A stretch of 32,000 nt of DNA. Source: Paramicrosporidium saccamoebae KSL3 (lineage: Eukaryota > Fungi > Cryptomycota). Of this stretch, positions 26,204 through 31,492 are shown one piece after another (positions within the stretch are counted from its first letter, which is position 1; every line of letters begins with the position of its first letter). The notes beneath the pieces were generated by a model. The model was given only the letters and a program-made list of their open reading frames with translations, was not told where the DNA came from and did not search any database. The translations under genes were made by a program, and so were the position numbers. The stretch is from NCBI GenBank assembly GCA_002794465.1, contig MTSL01000178.1, positions 54,025 through 86,024 on the forward strand, in the 5' to 3' direction.

Positions 26204-27505
26204 ATGAGTGATGCACGGAACGACAACTCGGAGAGGCTGGGGAATGACGCGGATAGCATTGCTGGGAAAGCGTCCCAGATAATGAAGCTCATGGAACAAC
26301 TGTCGCGTATGAAAGCCACAGAAGAACCAACCGAAACGGCCCGAGAACACAAATTCTGGACTACACAGCCGGTGTTAAAGTCAACTGCTTCGCTCAAAGA
26401 TATCCAGGATGGACCGATCGAGCCTTTGAAACAGATAGAAAGTGTTCGGGCAGAACCATATCTTCTCCCTGCAGAATTCCAATGGTGCAGTGTCAATGTC
26501 CATGATCCAGTGCAACGGGACGAGCTGTACCAACTTTTGAATTTGAACTATGTCGAGGATGTAGAGTCGCTGTTTCGATTTGACTACCCCCCACAATTCC
26601 TTGAATGGGCACTGAGGGCCCCAGGATGGCGTCCTGAGTGGCAAATTGGCGTTCGTGTCGCTGAAACTGGTAAGCTGGTTGCTTTTATTAGTGCGGTGCC
26701 GACTGCCCTGAGTATTAGATCCTGGGACGTACCGTCGGTGGAGGTGAATTTTTTGTGTGTTCACAAAAAGCTACGGTCAAAGAGATTGGCCCCACTTTTG
26801 ATTAGAGAAATTACGCGCCGTGTCAACTTGGAGGGCATCTTCCAAGCCCTCTATACTGCTGGTGCAGTTCTTCCAGGAGTCCTCTGCAAGGCTCAATACC
26901 ATCATCGTCCACTCAACTATAAAAAACTGGTAGAAGTGGGATTTACAGCCGTTCCACTGGGAAAGTCCATAGACCAGATGATAATGCGGCATCACCTTGC
27001 CAGAGAACATCAGCTCGGAGACTCCATCAGGCCCATGAGCCTTGCCGATGTACCAATGGTCACAACGCTGTTATCCAAATATCTTCAGAAGTTCCCCTTG
27101 CATCCGAAATTTGCTGAACATGAGGTTGCCCACTGGTTAGTGCCTCGAGAAAAGGTAATCTACTCCTATGTCGTCGAAAATTCGGGAGAAATCACAGACT
27201 TTGTTAGTTTCTACTCGCTACCCTCTACAGTTGTGGATAACCCTCTTCATGATCGCATTAATGTCGCCTATCTTTTCTATTATGCAACAAGCTCTTCTGA
27301 ACGACTCGTCAAAATCGTACATGCCGCATTGGTGATCGCCAAGGAACTAGACTTTGACGTCTTCAATTGCGTTGAAATTATGGACAATTCGCATTTTCTG
27401 AAAGACTTAAAGTTTGGCGGAGGCGATGGATGCCTGAATTACTACCTTTATAATTGGCAGACCCGACCTTTTAAGACACAAGATGTCTCGATTGTCATGC
27501 TCTAA
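26204..27505 (+). CDS. NMT1: Glycylpeptide N-myristoyltransferase
   Basis: HKFWTTQPV, LNYVEDVESLFRFDY, VNFLCVHKKLRSKRLAPLLIREITRRVN, ALYTAG, FGGGDGCLNYYLYNW; intronless. Confidence 0.98.
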   Translation: MSDARNDNSERLGNDADSIAGKASQIMKLMEQLSRMKATEEPTETAREHKFWTTQPVLKSTASLKDIQDGPIEPLKQIESVRAEPYLLPAEFQWCSVNVHDPVQRDELYQLLNLNYVEDVESLFRFDYPPQFLEWALRAPGWRPEWQIGVRVAETGKLVAFISAVPTALSIRSWDVPSVEVNFLCVHKKLRSKRLAPLLIREITRRVNLEGIFQALYTAGAVLPGVLCKAQYHHRPLNYKKLVEVGFTAVPLGKSIDQMIMRHHLAREHQLGDSIRPMSLADVPMVTTLLSKYLQKFPLHPKFAEHEVAHWLVPREKVIYSYVVENSGEITDFVSFYSLPSTVVDNPLHDRINVAYLFYYATSSSERLVKIVHAALVIAKELDFDVFNCVEIMDNSHFLKDLKFGGGDGCLNYYLYNWQTRPFKTQDVSIVML

Positions 27506-27564
27506 CAATATAAACACAAGTTCGAGATATAAAGTCGGTTTTCGTTAAAGAGTTACTCCGTCAC

Positions 27565-28383
27565 ATGGCAGATGATTGCACGCTACTGGATGGCTACGCG
27601 CTCTTCATCCAGTGCATTGTCGGTGTGTTGGCAGTTTCCAGTTTGTTTTTCAAGAGGCACATTGAACGGCCTCAAAGACCATGGATAGTCTGGTTTTTTG
27701 ACACCTCCAAACAGCTCTTGGCGGCTGGCGCCATGCACTTGGTCAATGTCTTGGCTGCGACCATTAGTGGAGAGAGCCAGCAGCGTCCAACAAACGAAGA
27801 CGCGTGTGTTTGGTATCTCACTTGGCTATTAGTCGATGCTACACTTTTATTGTTTCTAATGTCGGCGCTCTTGAAGATATTGCATGGCTTCGTTGAGCAA
27901 CGCAACATTGTCACACTGAGACATGGAGAGTATGGTGACCCTCCCAGATGGTCCATTTGGACCTTGCAGCTGTCAATTTATGCTCTGATTCTTTTCTCTG
28001 CAAAAGCAATCTGCCTTTACATTCTTTATCGGCATTCAGGCGTCTTTGTTAGTATTGCAAGATATATCCTGTATCCATTAGAAGGGCATCGGAGGCTAAA
28101 GTTGTTCACTGTGATGCTTATTGTGCCGCTAATTATCATGATATTCCAATATTGGCTTCTGGATAGTCTTATTATGGCCAACTGGCAACGAAGCACCTCG
28201 ACCGACTGGCAGTCCGTAGCAACAGAAAGTACTGAGGATGACTTAAGCAGATCTAATTCTATTCTAACAAAACGCTATGAAAAACAAATGGCCCGAGACT
28301 TGACGGAAAATCAGGGCGTCATACTGGACTACTTGCCGCGAGAGGCCCATTTCCATGCAGGCTCCTCACAAGAGGAATCCTAA
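27565..28383 (+). CDS. STIMATE/TMEM110 (yeast YPL162C, vacuolar membrane protein) family multi-pass protein
   Basis: CTLLDGYALFIQ, KRHIERPQRPWIVWFFDTSKQ, ACVWY, GEYGDPPRW, MLIVPLIIMIFQYWLLDSLI; five or more TM segments. Confidence 0.85.
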   Translation: MADDCTLLDGYALFIQCIVGVLAVSSLFFKRHIERPQRPWIVWFFDTSKQLLAAGAMHLVNVLAATISGESQQRPTNEDACVWYLTWLLVDATLLLFLMSALLKILHGFVEQRNIVTLRHGEYGDPPRWSIWTLQLSIYALILFSAKAICLYILYRHSGVFVSIARYILYPLEGHRRLKLFTVMLIVPLIIMIFQYWLLDSLIMANWQRSTSTDWQSVATESTEDDLSRSNSILTKRYEKQMARDLTENQGVILDYLPREAHFHAGSSQEES

Positions 28384-30065
28384 CGATTAGTAATAGATAC
28401 TCTGTACCTTGACCGATATCCCACAGGTTCCCAAGTTGACACGGAATTCATCACATAGCTGCAGCGTTTGCTGAGAAGCCTCCATGTTTCCTTCTTTCAT
28501 TTGGCTCAACCCAAGGGCTCTCACTCTGCTTCGAAACTTGATTGCTTCATCAATAACCAGACCTGATTCTAGTCGTGAACTCTGTAAGGCTTGCTGTGAA
28601 AAGCCAAACAAACCTAGCATTGAGCCGAGCTCGTCAATTGCGTGCATCAGAACTAGTGGGTGGGCTTCGTCGCCGTAGTTATCAATGTAAGCAGTTAGTC
28701 GTTTGGTAATATCAACAAATATTGGGCCTATCACCTTGGACCAATTGAAATCGCGACAAAGCTCCACTTGACAGGCTATACGAAAGTTGGAGATTCTACA
28801 AGGATCGTTATTACAATAAGGATGGCATACGCCAAAAGCACTTCTTTGTCCACAGTCGAAAACCGTCGCGCTATTGCAGGATAGTTTCGTTGATAAGCAT
28901 TGGTGAGGTTCTGGAGCAGATCCATTACCTCTTTTAGCTTCCTAGCGGCCAATGCCATCTTGTTCTCGCTATATTCCAAAGAATCACCATATTTGTGTAG
29001 GATGAATAGCATGCGTAGCTCAGCAGGCGAATGCACAGAAAGCGCATCCTACATGATTAGCGCCAAATCCATAGCAAGCCTTTATGGACACGTAATTCTT
29101 TAGGGATTTAGACATTTTTTCCTGATTGACGATCAGATGGCCTGCATGAGTAAAATGGGGGCACCAGGGAGAATCGCCATAAAAGCTCTCGCTCTGAGCA
29201 ATTTCGTTCTCATGGTGTGGGAACTCCAAGTCCACCCCTCCTGTATGCCAATCAATGTTTCTTCCAAACGCTGAATGGACTAAGAACAAGTCAGTGTCTC
29301 ACATACACGCCTGTACTGATGCTTGAACATTCGATATGCCAACCAGGACGGCCGAGCCCCCAAGGAGAGTCCCAGTATGGTTCCCCGGGTTTTGCTGGTT
29401 TCCACAGCGCAAAATCACGACGATCCGCTTTGGTAGCGGCGCTGACTTTTGTTTCGTTGCATGCACTAGATGGACGAAATTTTGGATAGCTATAACCCTT
29501 TTCCGTGTATCGAGAGATTGAGAAATGAATGCTGCCGTCCGGTGATTTGTAGGCGTATCCGTCTTCCAGTAGCCGGGCGATAAAATGGATAATGTCATCC
29601 ATGTGCTCCGATACTCGACTAAACTGCATCGGATGTGTGATCTAAAGTAAATGATCAAATGAAATTGCGATACATTAAGAGACTCCAATCCCTCAATGAA
29701 TTCGAGCTCAAATCGCCGAGATAATTCGTGGATTGTTTCGTTAGTCCGTGCTGCTTGCGAGATTATTTTGTCGTCCACATCCGTGATCCCCATTGACACT
29801 CGAACTTCCATTCCATAATGCTTTAATATCCTCTTCATTATATCAAAAGTCATGTATGTCCTATCAAAGCTGAGTAATGTGCAAATTTCATACCGCGCAT
29901 GGCCCAAATGGGGACTATCGTACACTGTAGGGCCACAAATATACCTTTAACATTAGCTCTCGCGTCACTCATGTACCAGTTTAATACACCTTTGGTCGAA
30001 GTTTGCAGCGTCTCGACCTTTTTGGTCAAAGAATTGTACACCTGGAACAGAGACGGAAATCGCAT
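28329..30065 (-). CDS. CARS: Cysteinyl-tRNA synthetase (class I), short type, 8 exons, 502 aa
   Basis: Introns 29945-29976, 29861-29893, 29642-29673, 29280-29316, 29049-29079 (GC-AG), 28796-28830 and 28380-28407, all with consistent phases. [13 protein letters not shown] (HIGH motif), [40 protein letters not shown]. Confidence 0.93.
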
Positions 30066-30099
30066 TGGCCCCGCCGCTCTGCAGACAAAGAAATCATTT

Positions 30100-31492
30100 T
30101 TATTCTACAACTAAATTGTAAGTTTCGGCAAGCGATTCTTCATCCTTTACAATCTGTTTCTCCAGCGGTACTGATGGAAAAACTAGGTCTCCACGCTCAG
30201 GGATGGTAGCCGATGGCGCCGTAGTCTGGATCATTTCTTCTAACTCTTTTTCCAAGTCTTCGTCGCTAGAATCGAGCATTCCATTCGGCTGTCCAAGAGC
30301 GGCAGAAATTTCTCCTTGTTGTATGAACGCTTCCTGAAGCAGTACTACGACATTGTCGACCTTTGAGACACTAAGATCATCTCTGGCGAGAATTTGTTTC
30401 AGTGTTGATTCGCCAGTTTTGTAGGCTTCATATATCTGCACATCCGAATGGGCGTCCGCAATCTTGAGGAGAATCTCATGAATCGTAGATGATGCTTGTA
30501 GTCTTTGATTCCTAGAGCTTTCGATAGTCTTAGATCTGCGCAGCTCGTGCAATGCCAACGAGCGATCATTCGTCTTTAGTGCTGCTATGGCAGCTTCCTT
30601 TGAGTCCTTAATTTTCAAGGCAAGCATGTGGAGTTGATCATCAAGGGAGGTGATAATATTCTTTAACTTTACAATGTTCGCTTCTTCTGGAGTAATGATT
30701 GGCGCTCTAGTTTCTCCAGGAAGTCTGATCTTTACAGCGCAATTTTCCAGGTTACTAGAGCTGGCCACAGCTATCATGTTCGTTTTTCTCATGTACTTTA
30801 AGAGCAGTTCAAAGTCGCGCTTATCATTGATCTTGCTCCAGCCTGCCCTTGACCGAGACTCTTGTACAATACTACAAAACTCCTGGAACGATATTGCACG
30901 AAGGAGCTGATCTTTCTTTTGCTCCCCATTAGCTCGGCTCACCAAATCGGCACACTCCTATACATTAATAGCAAATCTCGACTATACCTTTACAAGAACA
31001 TCCAGGATTAAAGGCCCACAATCAACAACCGTTTCAGGGACATCATTGTCTGCGGCATCAGTTCCAGAAACCCAGTGCCAACTCAAGGTCAGCGGTCCTG
31101 TAATGACAAGTTTCGCAAGTTTGCTGAGGAGAGAGGCCTCGCCTAGAGAGTCTCGATGTTCAGACTTTGCTAAACCTGTTTGCATGAGGTGATCCTATAA
31201 AGTTGATTTCATAGTCAGGGAAACATACCATCACATAGGCCACTCCAAGCGGTCTGTTGCCATTCCTGGAAAACAATTTGGCGACCAAAGAGGAGTCTGG
31301 AAGACGAAAAACACTGTTGTCGCAGAGACCAAGTCGAGTAGCGTTGAGCATATGTTCCTTCCAAAACAGTAACTTTGAGTCAAACGACTCGGGATTCACA
31401 CTCCTTGGTTGGGAGAATGAAGAGAACAAGCTCCGACTGCGTTGTTCATCCATCCATTCTGGCAGAGAGTTAAGGTATTCTTGAAGGTTCAT
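30100..31492 (-). CDS. CHMP7: CHMP7/Chm7-like ESCRT-II/III hybrid protein
   Basis: Exons 31492-31229, 31194-30988 and 30957-30100 with introns of 34 and 30 nt; 442 aa. SLFSSF...NPESFDSKLLFW N-terminal domain plus a Snf7 coiled-coil domain (ALHELRRSK, YEAYKTG, DEDLEKELEEM). Confidence 0.85.

Follow-up and report, generated by a model that had tools for sequence, protein, structure and literature searches.

In the genome of Paramicrosporidium saccamoebae KSL3, the gene of cysteinyl-tRNA synthetase (CysRS) and a convergent gene of the STIMATE family were found to run into each other within their coding sequences (CDSs), in a stretch of 32,000 nucleotides (nt) of contig MTSL01000178.1 (positions 54,025–86,024 of the forward strand), hereinafter referred to as the window. 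The last exon of CysRS, a micro-exon set off by a predicted 28-nt intron, lies antisense and wholly within the STIMATE open reading frame (ORF), and the stop codon of this ORF occupies the same bases as the 3' splice site of the intron (Table 1). Comparison of the sequences of nine lineages suggests, with a probability of about 0.8, that two conserved housekeeping genes overlap convergently in a genome that is highly compacted, and the layout is most readily understood as a side effect of this compaction, not as a new mechanism. According to the proposed scheme, removal of the U2-type intron from the CysRS pre-mRNA would join ...GISVK to the 16-codon micro-exon, which would provide the anticodon-binding domain with its conserved end (D-x6-7-W-K-W). 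The STIMATE frame, which is stop-free ahead of the exon, would continue antisense through it and terminate at the first in-frame triplet within the intron, i.e., at the complement of the acceptor (TTAG giving TAA). Each of the two mRNAs would thereby extend into the other gene, and the STIMATE tail would be translated because the ORF is open.

Predicted Spliced End of the CysRS Gene

The penultimate exon of CysRS ends with ...GISVK at 28408, directly ahead of the intron (GTACAGAGTATCTATTACTAATCGTTAG), in which the features of a U2-type intron, namely, a GT donor, an AG acceptor, and a YTRAY-like branch motif near the AG, are all present; the branch-like motif TACTAAT is located 7 nt from the AG. 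The last exon consists of the codons GAT TCC TCT TGT GAG GAG CCT GCA TGG AAA TGG GCC TCT CGC GGC AAG TAG. Both elements had been proposed in a preliminary description made from the window alone; the coordinates and strings of the intron, exon, and stop were reread from the sequence and are all as described there.

The relatives used for comparison were environmental contigs found by searches with the C-terminal 145 amino acids (aa) of CysRS and then with STIMATE. Nine lineages were distinguished, namely, the window, L006, L005, L002 (same sequence as L003, L004, and L009), L008, L007, L013/L014, L011, and L012. The junction of the convergent STIMATE and CysRS genes was present on contigs of all nine, with flanking NMT and CHMP7/FIBP on the longer contigs, and the identity to the window in the CysRS C-terminal domain ranged from 31 to 85% across the lineages sharing the arrangement. 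In every lineage one and the same codon (...[IV]-[KQE]) closes the CysRS exon and is directly followed by GT, and the intron ends with TAG followed by an Asp codon, while the intron sequences themselves have diverged. The intron length is 28 nt in the window and in L006, 32 nt in L005, 40 nt in L002, 38 nt in L008, 36 nt in L007, 55 nt in L013, and 57 nt in both L011 and L012. A peptide of the type D[SA][SG]..W.W stands directly after the intron in all nine lineages; outside the window, the last-exon peptides are DSFCEGPVWKWSSRGK (L006), DSSRESPDWKWSGCANDSLEKS (L005), DASLSSTWKWSSVARTDRLSKP (L002), DASVSSTWRWSSVARTDKLSKP (L008), DAGSSSSWAWSSGVRRGKRELSKP (L007), DSSSLSSQWKWSVVPRT (L013), DSSSSQSKWEWSADPRT (L011), and DSSPSQSKWKWLADPRT (L012). 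The intron lengths cover all three classes modulo 3, and retention of the intron leads to a stop or a frameshift in each lineage; consequently, the conserved peptide can be reached only by splicing. Of the three close pairs, two show faster divergence of the intron than of the exon: the intron identity is 65% versus 80% for the exon in L011/L012, and the introns of L002 and L008 differ by a 2-nt indel.

The ending of CysRS is conserved from bacteria to animals. The last exon aligns with this usual ending (G-I-x-I-K-D..S/T-W, GITVKDQQNSTSWSW-type), and the directly aligned CysRS endings matching it include GITVKDQQNSTSWSWKQ, GIEIKDRANASTWTF, and GIQLEDKKPGEPATWKF. Against a profile of 101 CysRS sequences from outside the clade, the spliced end gained 4.6 bits and extended the match by 9 positions (529 versus 520). 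D487, the first residue of the exon, is conserved in at least 90% of cases among 44 CysRS sequences, and the anticodon-binding domain ending G-[IV]-x-[IVL]-x-D-x(5-7)-[ST]-W is found in the spliced form only. Thus, the match of the spliced end to the usual CysRS ending, which the preliminary description had assumed, is shown by direct alignment, by the profile extension, and by the conservation of D487. The PDB sequence search did not anchor the last exon on solved CysRS, the alignments ending short of the C-terminus. The last exon evolves as CysRS coding sequence: the ratio of nonsynonymous to synonymous differences (pN/pS) in the CysRS frame was 0.18, 0.24, and 0.16 in the three close pairs (pooled Fisher test, p = 2.5 × 10−6), with corresponding values of 0.20, 0.14, and 0.23 for the penultimate exon in the same pairs. 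Since the intron and micro-exon recur in eight relatives, the exon is under purifying selection as part of CysRS, and its peptide is homologous to the universal C-terminus of CysRS, the terminal intron is very likely real.

Overlap with the STIMATE Frame and Codon-Phase Geometry

The STIMATE ORF matches the Pfam family STIMATE (PF12400; E-value = 5.9 × 10−26, residues 81–204), i.e., the multi-pass membrane family STIMATE/TMEM110; its homologues include animal STIMATE, and it is identical to the deposited model (P0126). The encoded protein is colinear with its relatives from the start through the tail in the unspliced frame, and the ORF ends with ...CAA GAG GAA TCC TAA (SQEES). In the window, there is no in-frame STIMATE stop upstream of 28381, the ORF is open through 28329–28379, and the CysRS exon accordingly lies wholly within it, as had been claimed; 48 nt (28332–28379) are sense codons on both strands. 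The sharing of bases between the stop and the acceptor was found to be just as described, CTAA being the reverse complement of TTAG, and the same kind of sharing recurs in L002, L008, and L007.

The STIMATE ORF crosses the CysRS exon in eight of the nine lineages. The overlap of the CDSs amounts to 64–106 nt in L002, L008, L007, L005, L013, L011, and L012, and there is none in L006. The STIMATE stop coincides with the acceptor in four lineages, as TTAG/TAA in the window, L002, and L008 and as CTAG/TAG in L007. In three others it falls within the intron, preceding the exon start by 10 nt (L011 and L012) or 19 nt (L013). In L005 it stands 37 nt before the exon start, past the 5' end of the intron and inside the penultimate exon. 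Judging from this distribution, the overlap is ancient and common across the clade, although lineages can lose it.

Several observations weigh against the overlap as interpreted here. By itself, the splice motif could be a chance occurrence, with 4 matches of GTAC..CTAAY..AG in the window versus 1.5 expected; it is the comparative evidence, i.e., the identical phase-0 position in nine of nine lineages followed by a conserved peptide, that places the intron beyond chance, and not the motif. In the window/L006 pair, the intron is 89% identical versus 79% for the exon, and there is hence no contrast in that pair, which is expected since a 28-nt intron is mostly splice signal. L006, the closest relative, carries an in-frame TGA (665–667) where the window and L005 have CAA, whereby its STIMATE is 32 codons shorter and the overlap is replaced by a 41-nt spacer; beyond this TGA, the frame runs on without a stop as far as the same acceptor-site TAA, and the loss of overlap in L006 is derived. 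The early TGA means that the overlapped STIMATE tail is dispensable, at least in L006. Finally, the GenBank model of the CysRS gene, PSACC_02835, ends unspliced, at the in-frame TAA inside the branch-site motif. If no splicing took place, CysRS would end with ...VQSIYY at 28387, a gap of 3 nt would separate the two neighboring CDSs, and what is taken for the exon would be a chance ORF. Prokaryote-style gene calls on the relatives likewise stop in or after the intron, and an unspliced isoform may coexist with the spliced one, considering that some of the related reduced parasites (Encephalitozoon) splice their introns inefficiently. However, PSACC_02835 is clearly defective elsewhere, being a CHMP7–CysRS chimera in which exons are skipped and which was obtained with Augustus trained on Rhizopus, the peptide after the intron is conserved in all nine lineages despite intron lengths of all three classes, pN/pS is about 0.2 in the spliced frame, and the truncated form lacks both the highly conserved Asp and the Trp of the CysRS ending, so that an unspliced CysRS end as the sole product is hardly credible.

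The overlap might also exist at the level of the ORF only, with the functional STIMATE mRNA ending or being spliced before 28329 and the exon remaining untranslated on the plus strand. The viability of a STIMATE ending about 32 codons earlier is demonstrated by L006; nevertheless, the window holds no stop before 28381, and an earlier transcript end would give a non-stop mRNA, while the tail is colinear in the unspliced frame across all relatives. The sole GT..AG candidate noticed, a plus-strand 22-nt intron (GTACTG..CAG, ~28230–28251), was rejected: it lies within the conserved peptide EDDLSRSNSILT, and its GT is missing in L006. Restriction of the overlap to the ORF level is therefore improbable.

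Both the openness of the antisense frame and the position of its stop can be read from the codon phase. The first codon of the exon, GAT, corresponds to 28379–28377 and the last STIMATE sense codon, TCC, to 28378–28380; the third codon positions face each other on the two strands, and positions 1 and 2 are swapped. Each STIMATE codon is the complement of positions 2 and 1 of CysRS codon i and position 3 of codon i-1. An antisense TAA or TAG requires a CysRS TAN codon following a T- or C-ending codon, and an antisense TGA requires a CAN codon following a T-ending codon. Tyr and His are absent from the exon peptides, and the few Gln codons of the latter are all preceded by A-, C-, or G-ending codons; consequently, the antisense frame cannot close within the exon. 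For this reason, the open antisense ORF was rejected as evidence of selection, its openness being guaranteed by the geometry of the CysRS peptide. The triplet after the exon is the complement of the acceptor xyAG, i.e., T, comp(y), comp(x): TTAG gives TAA, CTAG gives TAG, and both ATAG and GTAG give Tyr. The STIMATE tails of L005, L011, L012, and L013 read ...ESY, followed by a few more codons. The sharing of the stop and the acceptor is thus accounted for by the codon phase together with the YTAG acceptor consensus. In the STIMATE tail, H-F-H is the mirror of TGG-AAA-TGG (W-K-W).

Constraint in the Two Frames

CysRS is clearly the constrained partner. The pN/pS of the STIMATE frame on the overlap bases was 0.12–0.42; these values are coupled to CysRS and are no proof by themselves. 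At the shared third positions, STIMATE-only changes first looked depleted (0.30 versus 0.71 for doubly synonymous ones), and this depletion was considered as a sign of selection on STIMATE; it was discarded because it vanishes once transitions and transversions are split. The doubly synonymous third-position differences in the last exon (window, L002, L005–L008, and L011–L013) comprised 28 transitions and 1 transversion, and among transversions the STIMATE-only changes (6/60) were not rarer than the silent ones (1/40), i.e., there was no independent STIMATE signal inside the overlap. Such a strong transition bias at shared third positions can mimic selection in overlapping-frame tests. Selection in both frames was a check suggested by the preliminary description; it held for the CysRS frame, whereas the STIMATE frame gave no separate signal inside the overlap.

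True adaptive dual coding would imply that both peptides are under their own purifying selection, that the 48 nt are doubly constrained, and that the overlap is maintained for the sake of both peptides. The STIMATE ORF is indeed open over the exon in eight of the nine lineages, and a tail motif, HG[LF].S..(V)L....DH.H...ES, recurs in STIMATE of deep lineages regardless of whether its HGL part is outside the CysRS CDS (L011, L012, and L013) or inside it (L002, L007, and L008). The part of the tail belonging to STIMATE only had a pN/pS of 0.45 (L002/L008) and 0.23 (L011/L012). Set against this, the open frame is assured by the CysRS peptide, the transversion counts reveal no depletion, the tail motif is missing from the more distant STIMATE proteins compared, and the tail of L006 is truncated by the derived TGA, the 13 codons after which have a pN/pS of about 1.3 versus the window. 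A weak hint in favor of dual coding is given by the more distant relative L010 (4828–4873), in which CysRS apparently ends with ...ISIKDQ*, there is no terminal intron, and the WKW region is degenerate, while STIMATE retains the tail GISYYVLGSAEH and shares only some 7 nt with CysRS. Judging from its name and from its frame breaks, which are typical of long-read assemblies, the L010 contig appears to stem from an error-prone assembly of that kind, and L010 was not accepted as proof of an independent STIMATE tail. Taking both sides together, adaptive dual coding is rather unlikely, and the STIMATE tail is probably an overprinted extension whose translation would follow by default and whose constraint is weak at most.

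Gene Models, Known Systems, and the Locus

The intron positions of the CysRS gene were set by homology to other CysRS. The product matches the Pfam family tRNA-synt_1e (PF01406; E-value = 2.4 × 10−100, residues 22–329) and CysRS sequences of the PDB (down to E-value = 8 × 10−88), and its class I signatures, HLGH (residues 42–45) and KMSKS (residues 272–276), are invariant or nearly so in the 44-sequence alignment. The gene has seven introns within 1.7 kb. The six non-terminal ones are 31–37 nt long, with GTAYNN donors in five of them and GC-AG boundaries in the sixth, and YTRAY-like branch motifs occur in most. The GC boundary (intron 5) was chosen because only this boundary preserves the conserved spacing before DALSV; the orthologous intron is an ordinary GT-AG intron of 32 nt in L005 and is missing in L002 and L008. 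The 33-nt intron is in frame and stop-free and is therefore invisible to ORF logic; it was exposed as an 11-residue insertion after GHAR in alignments to solved CysRS structures.

Table 1. Coordinates of the features discussed, given as positions of the window unless another contig is named.
Feature	Coordinates	Strand	Description
CysRS gene	30065-28329	-	8 exons, 502 aa
CysRS exons	30065-29977, 29944-29894, 29860-29674, 29641-29317, 29279-29080, 29048-28831, 28795-28408, 28379-28329	-	uninterrupted 502-aa translation
CysRS intron, 33 nt	29861-29893	-	GTATGA...GATAG
CysRS intron 5	29049-29079	-	31 nt, GCTTGC...CTAAT...GTAG
Terminal CysRS intron (predicted)	28407-28380	-	28 nt, phase 0, GTACAG...TACTAAT...TTAG
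In-frame TAA in branch-site motif (TAC-TAA-T)	28389-28387	-	closes unspliced product ...VQSIYY; end used by PSACC_02835
Last CysRS exon (micro-exon)	28379-28329	-	51 nt, 16 codons + TAG stop
STIMATE-family CDS	27565-28383	+	272 aa, intronless, TAA stop 28381-28383
Tail-to-tail CDS overlap	28329-28383	both	55 nt including both stops
Shared tetranucleotide	28380-28383	both	plus CTAA (last Ser-codon base + STIMATE TAA); minus TTAG (CysRS 3' splice site)
PSACC_02835, deposited model	28387-31492; L001 10001-13106	-	CHMP7/Snf7-CysRS fusion
NMT	26204-27505	+	upstream neighbour of STIMATE
CHMP7/Snf7 gene	end at 30100	-	neighbour of CysRS

The deposited model PSACC_02835 (796 aa), to which the CysRS product has its best match, is wrong: it is chimeric, with CHMP7 fused to CysRS and several CysRS exons skipped, and its C-terminus is truncated at an unspliced 3' end. 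The annotation of P. saccamoebae was obtained using MAKER with Augustus trained on Rhizopus (PMC5701793), which makes these defects understandable, and it seems to miss tiny introns systematically. An automatic intron census of the window was noisy, and plausible introns of about 26–37 nt were common. The present reconstruction corrects the only public gene model, PSACC_02835. Gene finders trained on ordinary fungi miss introns of 28–37 nt in the P. saccamoebae lineage, and the protein sets used in comparative genomics of Rozellomycota and Microsporidia may be systematically damaged. On the minus strand, AATAGAAT (plus strand ATTCTATT, 28256–28263) is located about 66 nt downstream of the CysRS stop; it is conserved at the nucleotide level in the window, L006, L005, L002, L007, and L008 and forms the STIMATE [SD]-S-I codons. 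This could be a CysRS polyadenylation signal inside the STIMATE CDS or a conserved STIMATE motif.

Overlapping transcription occurs in microsporidia and nucleomorphs. The preliminary description had considered coding-coding overlap coupled to splicing to be rare in eukaryotes; overlap of neighboring CDSs as such is no rarity in compacted genomes: in Giardia muris 441 genes (9.5%) overlap a neighbor by 1–327 bp (PMC7641422). As in these compacted genomes, the intergenic DNA at the junction studied here is gone, and adjacent CDSs or transcripts would run together. In contrast to the Giardia and microsporidian overlaps, the shared segment here is a putative separately spliced micro-exon of a conserved essential enzyme, the stop of the partner gene lies within the acceptor of the intron, and the arrangement is common to eight of the nine lineages. 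To our knowledge, no comparable conservation has been described for the overlaps of Giardia or microsporidia. The very short introns of reduced parasites are another parallel, the terminal intron being a 28-nt GT-AG intron with TACTAAT and the others in the gene measuring 31–37 nt; unlike those parasites, P. saccamoebae is intron-rich, with seven introns in 1.7 kb, one of which is GC-AG. The reach of compaction without intron loss is shown by this case.

The extension of a reading frame over an older CDS also resembles overprinting, which is best known in viruses: CysRS dictates the sequence, and HFH mirrors WKW. The difference is that here the antisense tail of a cellular gene would be extended, rather than a new gene being formed. 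A classic case in mammals is the convergent pair THRA (c-erbA alpha) and NR1D1 (Rev-erbA alpha), which share an antisense terminal coding exon and in which the antisense transcript reportedly affects whether the alpha-2 splice form is made. Both systems combine convergent coding overlap at a terminal exon with a 3' splice site, which is alternatively used in THRA/NR1D1. In distinction from that pair, the overlap described here is explained by compaction together with codon-phase geometry, and the CysRS intron is constitutive in design, because the conserved protein end needs it. By analogy with THRA/NR1D1, the overlap might be put to use, the STIMATE transcript pairing with the CysRS pre-mRNA over the intron, acceptor, and micro-exon and modulating removal of the terminal intron. 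Such pairing would set the ratio of full-length CysRS to the truncated ...VQSIYY form and couple the expression of the two genes, and selection for STIMATE/CysRS coupling would in that case account for the long persistence of the arrangement; this possibility is very unlikely. As a by-product of compaction, the locus represents a clean eukaryotic antisense coding overlap that is conserved in the clade and simply explained by codon geometry, and it lends itself to testing methods by which the constraints on overlapping frames are told apart.

P. saccamoebae is an intranuclear parasite of amoebae from a sister lineage of Microsporidia, with a genome of 7.3 Mb and a GC content of 47%; stranded poly(A) RNA-seq has been published for it, and the genome paper makes no mention of introns, intergenic spacers, or gene overlap (PMC5701793). 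The genes at the locus are tightly packed, with spacers of 34–59 nt: the spacer between the CHMP7 stop and the CysRS ATG (30066–30099) measures 34 nt, and that between the NMT stop and the STIMATE ATG (27506–27564) measures 59 nt. With spacers of this size, promoters and 3' ends must sit within the neighboring coding regions. The gene order FIBP-CHMP7-CysRS followed by convergent STIMATE-NMT was kept in the whole loci of L002, L011, and L012, despite an identity to the window of 31–47% in the CysRS C-terminal domain, which indicates very stable microsynteny in the clade. A second convergent pair in the window (about 19475/19486) has a gap of ~10 nt, going by the deposited models.

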